From NCBI GenBank assembly GCA_023515725.1, contig JALDTO010000284.1:1-6734 (forward strand): DNA of 6,734 bases, written 5' to 3'. The notes beneath the pieces were generated by a model that saw nothing but the letters and a program-made list of their open reading frames with translations, had not been told where the DNA came from and searched no databases. Positions 1,236-6,440 of this stretch are shown here, piece after piece. This DNA comes from Amoeboaphelidium protococcarum X5. Lineage: Eukaryota; Fungi; Aphelidiomycota. Position 1 is the first letter of the stretch. Each line of letters begins with the position of its first letter. Made by a program: the position numbers and the translations under genes.

Positions 1236-1985
1236 TCACAAAATTGAACCAATAGTGGAGACTAGAGTGGTGGCAAAGTTGGGACATGCAAGATTGTAAT
1301 CGCTCTCGTACACTTGGAAATTCCTAATAATACCAAACGCGGTGATAGACACCTTGTAGTGCAAAGGAATTTGATTTTTGCCACCACCGAGACCACATGA
1401 GGTGAGGATGGTTGACAGCACGGGATTAGTAGGTGATCCAGTGGCATTCAACGTGGCAGGCACCTCCAACTTTGTCTTTCCCATAGCGGGCAGTGTAAGT
1501 GATTAATATCCACCACCAATAGATTAAAGTCCACCATTATCTTTCAATCTGATAAAGACATCAACGTTCACTCTATCAATCTTGTACTCCGCGATACTGT
1601 TACTCTTCACGTCTGCACTGAGTGTCATCAGTAGACCAACATTAATCGGATTTGTACCACTAATGACCACAGGACCACTTCCATCAGCATTCTGACGCGC
1701 AGCCATGTTGATATTACTGATATCAGGAATTCGGAAAATAAAGTACAGCAGCACTCCAAGGCCAGCGAGGAGCAGCACGGTAATGATGAGGCAACACACA
1801 CAACTAAACACGGTATTGCAGCAGCAGAAGAAAGGCTTAGATTTCGCTTTGGATAGACTATTTCGCTCATGATCAAGATCTTGCACATTATAGCTCTACT
1901 GCGGATATGTCTAGATCTATGGAGGCTGATAAATGTCCTATTACTACTACTGCTAATACAACTACTCTTGAGAATTCATATTCAT
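1236..1985 (-). CDS. Single-pass (probably type II) membrane protein, LEA_2/NDR1-HIN1-like, 249 aa
   Basis: ATG 1985 to TGA 1238-1236 in one frame, joining track ORFs 1524..1886 and 1236..1484 through 11 TAA/TAG codons. It has a Q/P/Y-rich N-terminus (MNMNSQEQLYQQQQQQDIYQPPQIQTYPQQSY), a Cys cluster (FFCCCNTVFSCVCC), a TM helix (LIITVLLLAGLGVLLYFIF) followed by RIP, and a beta-rich domain with SCG and CP cysteines. The family call rests on recalled architecture. Confidence 0.8.
1938..1955 (-). repeat. Polyglutamine tract (Q6) encoded by TAG CAG TAG TAG TAA TAG
   Basis: Read directly on the minus strand, in frame with the downstream membrane-protein ORF. Confidence 0.85.
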
Positions 1986-2374
1986 ATTTTAAACTATTAT
2001 AACTATAATGTATCAGGTAAACAAACTACTATCAAGATATCTAGTTTATTTCTTGTACACTTATTCAAAGAAGAGGAAGAAGGTGGACGTGTAACGAGTA
2101 TCGATCTAGATTGTCTTGGCAAATCAAAACATTTTAGAAACCGCGCGTGCGACAGAAATGGTCACACTTGTTTCCTATTCCGGCTCTGATTCGCCAAAAT
2201 AGTATCTTATCTGTATCCAGATAGTGAGTACATGTAGTAGGAAAGTGGAAGTTTGATCAAAATGCAAATACATTTATTCAACAACAATTTTCACATATAC
2301 TATATATTGTATAATCAACGACGAGGTAATGTGCAAATGCAATTTGAGCTAACAATCAGGCGTCGAAATAAACT

Positions 2375-2893
2375 TCACGAATGGCCATTTTGAGAGTGTA
2401 CCATTTACAATTACTAACGAGTGAACAGCAAATCCTACTGAGTACTTTGTAACTTGAGCGATAGCATTGCAACTTCATGTCTGTATCTCTCAACCTATCC
2501 TTCGAGTTCAGCAATGTAAGACAGGCGTTTCTCACGCGATTTTCTGGCAGCCAAGCGGTTTCGCTCGCGTCTGCGCTCATTCCGTCCCTCGATCACATCC
2601 TCAGGAGAGGTGCTACTGTTATGCATTCGATACACGGATGATGAAGTTGTTCCAGAAGTAGCAGTCACGCGCCGTTAACGTTTACTATGACCATTAATAT
2701 CTACGCCGCCAGATTGCAATGAACTTTAAATCGCGCCCAATTCTTAAGGATGTTCATGATGATTTTATTGACAATCATCATCTAGAAAATTAGTCAGGAG
2801 GCACGTTTCACTAGAATGAGCATCTGAAGTTAAATTTCCGCTGCTTAGAGGAAACGCTGAATCGATCCAATCGCAAAGTTGACTGTTCTCCAT
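2375..2893 (-). CDS. bZIP transcription factor, 172 aa
   Basis: ATG 2893 (MENSQLCDW...) to TGA 2377-2375 with 9 internal TAR. The basic region ERRRERNRLAARKSREKR (about 2578-2525) has the invariant N-x7-R and is followed by the zipper YIAELEGQVERYRHEVAMLSLKLQSTQQDLLFTRQQL. The bZIP domain is absent from the supplied ORF track. Confidence 0.9.
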
Positions 2894-3120
2894 GTCGCGT
2901 CTTGACTTGGATAATCGCAGATATATTATTATGCCTGTGAAATGACAGGAAACACAATGATGAGCAAACGGCCGATGTGTCGCTTTCAATCGTGATGAAA
3001 TCAACACCGACAATCGTGCGCTGACGTGTCAATGCGATGAAATGCAATGAATGAAATCGTGAACTAAAAATCAATCATCAAAATTCCAGATAAACGTTTT
3101 CAATTCATTAGCAATTCATA

Positions 3121-3126
3121 TTTATT
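3121..3126 (-). terminator. Putative polyadenylation signal AATAAA overlapping the caleosin stop (TGAATAAA)
   Basis: Seen in sequence. Similar signals lie 3' of the bHLH gene (4615-4620, -), the bZIP gene (2273-2278, -) and E1 (ATTAAA 6451-6456, +). These hexamers are common in AT-rich DNA. Confidence 0.4.
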
Positions 3127-4392: not shown

Positions 4393-4666
4393 CTTGCACA
4401 AAGTATTTAATGAAAGTAATTGTTGTGTAGAAGAAAGAAGAGTTATGACGTTATGTCTGACCATAAAGTGTGACAACGTTGTTTCGAGTCGAGTCATCCT
4501 AAGACTGAATCAGACCAGCGCGATGTCTTTTGATTTTGCAGACTGAAGAAAATTCACGCGTCCATCTATGAGAAAGCCAAGTGTAAGTAAAGAAGATGTA
4601 TTTTACATGCTGCTTTTATTATACAAACCAGTGTAGTCTAGATCGATCATTAGAACAAAGTCCTAA

Positions 4667-5308
4667 TCAACTGGAATCTGTATTACAAGCTTTGAGCTTT
4701 TCCAATTCAGTTTCCAACCTACTTATGCGCTCCTTCTGGTCCTTGTCCTATTTCAGCATCTTTTCAATGAAAATGACTGCTCCATCCAGTACTTCACCTT
4801 TGTTTTTAGTTTCGCCATCATCTGTAAGCTTGATCAGAGCACATATCTTCGAGATGGCTTCATTAATGTGTTCACGGCGTCTCTTTTCGACTTCACGGTG
4901 AGAGAGGCGCCTCTTTCGCTGCTAAGCATCTTCACTACGCGTCACAGAATTGCGTTTAGATTTTTGCATGTGTGACAACAGTAGAGGAGGCTAAGAGTTT
5001 GAAACACCAGTTATAGGCAACTGGGAATTGAATCCGTTCAGCAAATTGTGACCTTATCCAAAATCTGGCAGAATTGATGAGTTTACATTATTCGACTATT
5101 GCTATGACCCAATGTTATTACCCAGCATCAGAGGAGATTAGATCATGGACTGGAGTTAGAGCTGAGGCATTATATTTTACTATCCCATTGTGAGCAGACT
5201 GTTGTCTTTCTCTTCCATTGTCTTTGGCAATATATTCATCTGGCGCGCCTCTTGCAGACCGGTACCATTGTTACTGTTATTCTTAGGATCAGATTGAGAG
5301 AATGCCAT
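4667..5308 (-). CDS. bHLH(-ZIP) transcription factor, group B, Cbf1/USF-like, 213 aa
   Basis: ATG 5308 to TGA 4669-4667 with 10 internal TAR. A Q/N/S-rich N-terminus precedes RKRRLSHREVEKRRREHINEAISKICALIKLTDDGETKNKGEVLDGAVIFIEKM (H-E-R basic triad) and a short coiled coil QKERISRLETELEKLK. Absent from the supplied ORF track. Confidence 0.9.
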
Positions 5309-5690
5309 TGTTGCAATGTGGTATATAGTCAGGCGTATTAACAAAAGTGAATTTTTAGAATAAAAGATAACAACTAATGTGATCGAGGTTAATTGGTGTT
5401 AATTGGTGTAACTTGCCGAATGACGTCCAATCAGATGCCGTTTACCTTATCAACTGATCACAATCTTAATATCGTCATTGCACCAATTTGTGTTCGCTTG
5501 TGTTGAAAATATTTTTGAGATTCTTTCAGCTAGCTTTTCATATGCGCTACGGTAATAACAATTTCAAGCTTACCGTAGTCGAAAATGTTTACTCTTATTC
5601 CAGATCAATTATCGAGCATTAGTCGGCTTTAGCTTTGAAATTCGAAAGTCAATTCCATTGCTGATTATTAATCACAGTCTGAGATTTAAG
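5309..5690. promoter_or_regulatory. Divergent (bidirectional) promoter region shared by the bHLH and E1 genes
   Basis: 382 bp between head-to-head ATGs. Contains ATTGG at 5392 and 5402, CCAATCAG at 5427-5434, CCAAT at 5483 and CRE-like TGACGTC at 5421-5427. Motif function is inferred. Confidence 0.6.
5388..5407 (+). repeat. Perfect 10-bp tandem repeat (GTTAATTGGT)x2
   Basis: Seen directly. The 8-mer AATTGGTG (5391, 5401) also occurs inverted as CACCAATT at 5481-5488. Confidence 0.8.
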
Positions 5691-6440
5691 ATGCGCGTTC
5701 TATTGACTGATATTGAAGGAACTACTACGCCTATATCTTTTGTCAGAGACGTACTATTTCCATATTGTTCCGCCAATGTAGAGTAGTTTCTCTAAGATCA
5801 CTGGCAAGATGATGAGATTTAAGAGTCTTACATCAAGCCTCTGATCGCGTTATTGAATGAACTCGATTACTCCCTGCACAGTTAATCGAAAGACAATGTT
5901 CAGTACATTAAATAAATTTCTGCAGGAGTCCAAGATTTGATAAAGAAAGATCTCAAGCTTGGCCCACTTAAACAATTACAAGGATTGATATGGAGGACTG
6001 GTTATGAGAAAGGCGCGTTGAAAAGCATTGTCTATGAGGATGTCTTTGACGCGTTCAAGTCGCTTTAATAACGCGGAATCTATATACATATATATAGCAG
6101 TGGTTCTGTTGAGGCATAGAAGCTGCTGTTCAAGTATTCCAATCGTGGGGATCTAACACAATTCATCTCTGGATATTACGATACTAATATTGGACATAAG
6201 AGAGAGGTGTCGAGTTATTATAAAATTTTGGAGTAGATTCAGTAGAATTTCGACGGATAATTAGATGCACAAGATGTAACATTTCTTACAGATATTTTAG
6301 AAGAGGCTGAGGCTGCTTAGAAGGCTGGGATGAAAGCTGTTATAATGGTTCGTCCAGGTAACTATTAGATCGACTCCCGGAAAGTTTAGCAATTCAAATG
6401 CAGCGAGACATTTCAACAAGCTCTTGACATGAACATATGA
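5691..6440 (+). CDS. UTR4: Enolase-phosphatase E1 (acireductone synthase; UTR4/ENOPH1/MtnC family, HAD superfamily), 249 aa, intronless
   Basis: [52 protein letters not shown](TAG 6117-6119)-[28 protein letters not shown] and VRPGN are E1 signatures, all in one frame with 14 internal TAA/TAG and a terminal TGA at 6438-6440. Confidence 0.95.

Follow-up and report, generated by a model that had tools for sequence, protein, structure and literature searches.

Amoeboaphelidium protococcarum is an algal parasite and a close relative of fungi. A stretch of its nuclear DNA of 6,734 bases and 39% GC, hereafter the window, raises a basic question: what do the triplets TAA and TAG mean in this organism? 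Under the standard code the ORFs of the window are short fragments only. When TGA alone is taken as a stop, long frames are found on the minus strand at 2012–1236, 3028–2375, 4295–3126 and 5449–4667, and on the plus strand at 5424–6440. Reverse-complemented, the window is identical throughout to contig JALDTO010000284.1 from assembly GCA_023515725.1 of this species: this match is the source itself, which names the organism without adding independent support. NCBI taxonomy places the genus in Aphelidea. The nuclear DNA of A. protococcarum almost certainly follows translation table 6, in which UAA and UAG specify glutamine and UGA alone ends translation. This reading, put forward in an original prediction, is upheld by homologue columns for TAG and by codon swaps for both TAA and TAG, with pseudogenes excluded by selection and wholesale editing by RNA.

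The long frames correspond to five genes, listed in Table 1 together with a partial sixth. Stop-free pieces of the two transcription factor genes match Pfam bZIP_1 (E 4.9e-07) and HLH (E 6.7e-09). The E1 protein matches TIGR01691 (E 3.8e-71) and the determined structures of E1 and Utr4 (PDB 1yns, 2g80), and its table-6 translation is identical to the deposited protein P0384. The caleosin matches the Pfam Caleosin family, with the domain at residues 164–333; among the proteins nearest to a 148-aa piece of it are those of chytrids and aphelids. A profile search retrieved a 404-aa A. protococcarum protein identical to the window caleosin at 401 of 404 positions, in a cluster that includes P0230 (KAI3629536.1), and the table-6 translation is identical to the deposited P0230. 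As the deposited proteins were themselves translated with table 6, this agreement serves for identification only and is not evidence for the code. For the product of the gene at 1985–1236 a LEA_2-like domain is possible, as a weak lead only, every atlas match lying below 0.9. None of the five genes is identified as a toxin, an effector or a virus gene by these results.

Table 1. Genes, intron and selected codons of the window
Feature	Position	Strand	Details
Sixth gene, 5'-partial	~73-609	+	TAG 133-135, TAA 544-546, terminal TGA 607-609
249-aa gene	1985-1236	-	Q-rich N-terminus, Cys-rich/hydrophobic segment; 3 TAA + 8 TAG, TGA end
bZIP transcription factor, 172 aa	2893-2375	-	6 TAA + 3 TAG, TGA end
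Caleosin/peroxygenase, 404 aa (KAI3629536.1, MIR68_012430)	4392-3126	-	two exons; 3 TAA + 6 TAG, TGA end
Caleosin GT-AG intron, 52 nt	4283-4232	-	skipped in RNA run X13; GT..AG in four of four copies
TAG, caleosin QQH motif	3833-3831	-	column 96% Gln, 130 homologues
TAA, caleosin codon 384	3191-3189	-	CAA in copy L004
bHLH transcription factor, 213 aa	5308-4667	-	4 TAA + 6 TAG, TGA end
TAA, bHLH codon 85	5056-5054	-	CAA in copies L002 and L004
Enolase-phosphatase E1 (acireductone synthase), 249 aa	5691-6440	+	7 TAA + 7 TAG, 11 CAR, TGA end
TAG, E1 SSGSVEAQKLLF motif	6117-6119	+	column 100% Gln, 114 homologues
TAA, E1 codon 44	5820-5822	+	best-conserved TAA column: 47% Gln, 36% Lys
TAA, E1 codon 35	5793-5795	+	CAA in copies L001 and L004

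Summed over the five genes, 1,287 codons include 23 TAA, 30 TAG, 30 CAA and 27 CAG; the standard code would read 53 of them as stops. The hand counts of 11, 9, 9, 10 and 14 TAA/TAG codons per gene are reproduced exactly on recount (3+8, 6+3, 3+6, 4+6 and 7+7), as is the excess of TAR over CAR codons in E1, 14 to 11; there are no frameshifts. The caleosin figure of nine holds because its intron, which lies in the 5' region and is the sole one among the five genes, is excluded: this intron contains two TAA triplets that look in-frame yet are non-coding, and an unspliced reading would give 11. With the intron removed, the ATG lies at 4392 and the protein reaches 404 aa. The five genes carry no internal TGA, as had been claimed, and all of them end in TGA. 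Internal TGA thus amounts to 0 in 1,287 codons versus 3.8% in the two alternative frames on those strands (P ~1e-22, a value that is partly built in, as TGA set the limits of the ORFs). Across 11 genes the internal count is 0 in 3,511 codons, and TGA ends 30 of 30 gene copies, although these ends come from table-6 annotation, in which TAR ends could not appear, and are therefore partly circular. Glutamine codon use in the 11 genes is near equal (TAA 66, TAG 54, CAA 55, CAG 60).

The amino acid specified by each codon was examined in distant homologues. X was placed at each TAA and TAG, and the four copies of the locus described below were aligned with homologues of other organisms, 114 for E1 and 130 for caleosin; five Logan E1 proteins of 260–261 aa were omitted from the E1 alignment. 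For TAG the outcome is clear: over 15 columns glutamine scores +18.2 bits and the next best residue, Glu, −1.8. The two TAG codons highlighted in the original prediction do lie at the E1 and caleosin motifs, in columns where glutamine is conserved across the family (Table 1). For TAA nine columns were usable, mostly at variable surface positions, and the scores are Ser 3.2, Glu 2.0, Gln 1.5 and Lys 0.6 bits. Among the controls, GAA is clearly assigned to Glu and AAA to Lys, whereas CAA yields Gln 11.7 versus Glu 10.6, a narrow result. As the CAA control barely separates the two residues, the column test has low power at this size.

A second line of evidence comes from the genome of A. protococcarum itself, for which a genome-wide duplication has been reported (PMC10608142). 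Three further syntenic copies of the locus, in line with that duplication, were compared with the window: L001 and L002 from assembly GCA_023515745.1 (93% and 97% identical) and L004 from GCA_023515725.1 (90%). The comparison covered seven genes in four copies from two assemblies, with X at TAA and TAG in the alignment. Variation was found in 7 of 49 TAA/CAA columns, 10 of 53 TAG/CAG columns and 10 of 51 TAA/TAG columns (14–20%). The benchmarks are 86 of 600 columns (14%) for synonymous transitions and 20 of 983 (2%) for conservative non-synonymous transitions (K/R, I/V, D/N, E/K, Q/R and N/S). The three pairs differ from the conservative replacements (p = 1.5e-4, 7e-7 and 5e-7, respectively) and do not differ from the synonymous class (p = 1, 0.42 and 0.31), where all p-values take columns as independent and the events in four related copies are not fully so. 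Other pairs hardly vary: TAA/GAA in 1 of 62 columns, TAA/AAA in 0 of 46, TAA/TAY in 0 of 86 and TAG/TGG in 0 of 51. On this sequence comparison the four codons TAA, TAG, CAA and CAG behave as mutual synonyms. The duplicated genome thus provides an internal test of the code, in which swaps between homeologues support TAA as glutamine where distant homologues cannot. The claim that TAG is better supported than TAA accordingly was fair for distant homologues and is settled by the copy swaps, TAA then being well supported.

The same copies bear witness to selection. In 41 columns TAA or TAG is unchanged across copies, and TGA closes each of the five genes in every copy. The dN/dS ratio over the five genes, calculated with table 6 for the window against each further copy in turn, comes to 0.086, 0.191 and 0.105; values near 1 had been named as the mark of pseudogenes, and the observed range denotes purifying selection. 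Among copies E1 shows a dN/dS of 0.22–0.41 versus 0–0.12 for the other four genes, though it is a conserved metabolic enzyme.

Parts of the window are contained in sequencing runs of ten studies. One is a freshwater metatranscriptome, X13, with a contig of 1,244 nt that covers 3114–4409, lacks the intron and carries seven differences. U-to-C editing of the minus-strand caleosin mRNA would read as A>G on the plus strand: no such change is present, and all nine TAA/TAG codons are intact. The original prediction had called for RNA data to exclude editing, and this unedited, spliced contig excludes it on a wholesale scale; X13 is a consensus in which rare variants are lost, so partial editing could remain. 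Runs from other samples repeat the codon swaps, for example TAG to CAG at 2416 and TAA to TAG at 2411. Run X3, which contains a second haplotype ~90% alike, is probably the source sample of the window.

That UAA is ambiguously decoded, or acts as a terminator in some contexts near transcript ends, instead of being a plain synonym of CAA, is very unlikely; if true, the code would be a transitional one, in an organism that is related to fungi and can be cultured. The specific proposal that TAG specifies glutamine and TAA another residue (Glu, Lys or Ser) or an ambiguous one, a divergence of UAA from UAG that a few eukaryotes show, draws on the homologue columns, which do not single out glutamine at TAA, but CAA itself scores hardly better for glutamine than for Glu in that test. 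Moreover, TAA swaps with CAA and with TAG at the synonymous rate, and its exchanges with GAA, AAA, TCA, TTA and TAY are confined to 0–1 columns each, transversions being rarer anyway; such a split in meaning is highly improbable. Less probable again is a code in which UAR is glutamine inside genes yet a terminator near transcript ends, as in Condylostoma and Blastocrithidia. In its favour, gene ends annotated with table 6 cannot reveal TAR ends. However, the most distal caleosin TAA codons, 384 and 397, are replaced by CAA between copies, the homology of E1 with yeast Utr4 extends to residue 240, beyond the last TAG at codon 233, and the consistent TGA ends of the five genes in every copy also speak against it.

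U-to-C editing of TAA and TAG to CAA and CAG, known from hornwort and fern organelles, would likewise yield glutamine at these sites, but the spliced caleosin contig shows no edited position at nine of nine sites, and the protein P0232, which derives from a 1,244-nt Logan contig, stops right before TAA codon 384: editing is barely conceivable as the explanation. Even further removed is the view that the 53 standard-code stops betray pseudogenes or sequencing errors. The absence of TGA and of frameshifts, the invariant TAA/TAG columns, the low dN/dS (0.09–0.19) and the recurrence of these genes in both assemblies as well as in independent runs all oppose it, and it was rejected, the selection and copy data already refuting it.

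Table 6 in A. protococcarum, the reading retained here, is real but already known, and the present result is a blind rediscovery of a published code. The assignment of UAR to glutamine in this species has been in the literature since 2013 (Karpov et al., Protist 164:195, doi 10.1016/j.protis.2012.08.001), as referenced in PMC5304391, PMC6299283 and PMC11687900. The published code concerns the same species and contig and the same meaning of UAA and UAG, the deposited proteins carry glutamine at these sites, and no difference was found. The code is not mentioned in PMC3975115 and PMC8657485. According to PMC11687900, A. protococcarum is grouped with ulvophyte algae, Hexamita, the oxymonad Streblomastix and ciliates, in all of which UAR likewise specifies glutamine and UGA is the sole stop. 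Compared with those table-6 groups, the A. protococcarum code is of independent origin in a fungus-related lineage, with intron-poor, gene-dense DNA of 39% GC. PMC6299283 describes TAG and TAA as apparent glutamine codons in A. protococcarum and not in Paraphelidium tribonemae, an aphelid with the standard code whose caleosin (60%) is among the closest outside the species. That paper reports no in-frame stops for P. tribonemae, unlike A. protococcarum, which implies that the reassignment is not common to all aphelids. The split or context-dependent codes of rhizarian exLh, Iotanema, Condylostoma and Blastocrithidia share with A. protococcarum the use of stops as sense codons; unlike in those codes, TAA and TAG here behave as interchangeable with one another and with CAR, and double use of TAR or of internal TGA is not seen.

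By analogy with other table-6 eukaryotes, UAA and UAG would be decoded by Gln-charged tRNAs with UUA and CUA anticodons, and an eRF1 devoid of UAR recognition would terminate only at UGA. No tRNA genes occur in the window or at loci L001, L002 and L004, and the eRF1 gene lies outside the window. In practice, table 6 is required for analysing the A. protococcarum genome and metagenome contigs of its relatives, as genes otherwise come out fragmented. The Logan protein P0232 (296 aa) illustrates a related pitfall: its TAG codons are read through and it ends at a TAA, apparently an artefact of gene calling with TAG alone as an added sense codon. Anyone searching for split codes could be misled by it.

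A number of additional features of the locus were observed. At 404 aa the caleosin is longer than most homologues (~240), owing to long N- and C-terminal extensions, the latter resembling a coiled coil. Close relatives of the caleosin were sought among JGI metagenome contigs, and none was found. The next-closest caleosins are on two ENA metagenome contigs, L005 and L006, which have 47% GC and are gene-dense and apparently intron-poor; their called genes end in TAA, TAG and TGA, and they look like standard-code DNA that adds no lineage. In run X8 a contig continues past 4393, at the caleosin start, with 26 unrelated A-rich letters, and similar loose ends lie at 2008, 5648 and 6433: these are possibly adapters or strain-specific 5' ends. 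Coverage in X8 tracks gene bodies, as RNA would. Locus L004 also harbours, at 10544–12700, a gene for a 718-aa kinase, in which TAA occurs 19 times and TAG 7 times.

The window is closer to L002, from the other assembly (98–100% over ~500–4500 and 88–97% beyond), than to L004 from its own (90%), a pattern that, as far as sequence similarity goes, fits a hybrid or mosaic strain history. The partial sixth gene, for which no Pfam family was found, is identical at 169 of 178 positions to residues 71–248 of a 248-aa gene at L002 9829–10575. Together with ~1.2 kb around it (window 1–1233), it is present in L001 (9915–11060) and L002 (9829–12008). The syntenic position in L004 lacks it and is followed directly by another gene, of 250 aa (9347–10099) and 92% identical to L002 11247–12008. 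Judged from these alignments, the region is a presence/absence difference between homeologues. In L001 and L002, window positions 441–563 have a second match (88%) at a distance of ~600 bases. Window positions 1–76 fail to align with either of these two loci, and the gene runs on upstream there, with 70 more codons in L002; a breakpoint, an intron difference or a contig-end artefact is possible at this edge.
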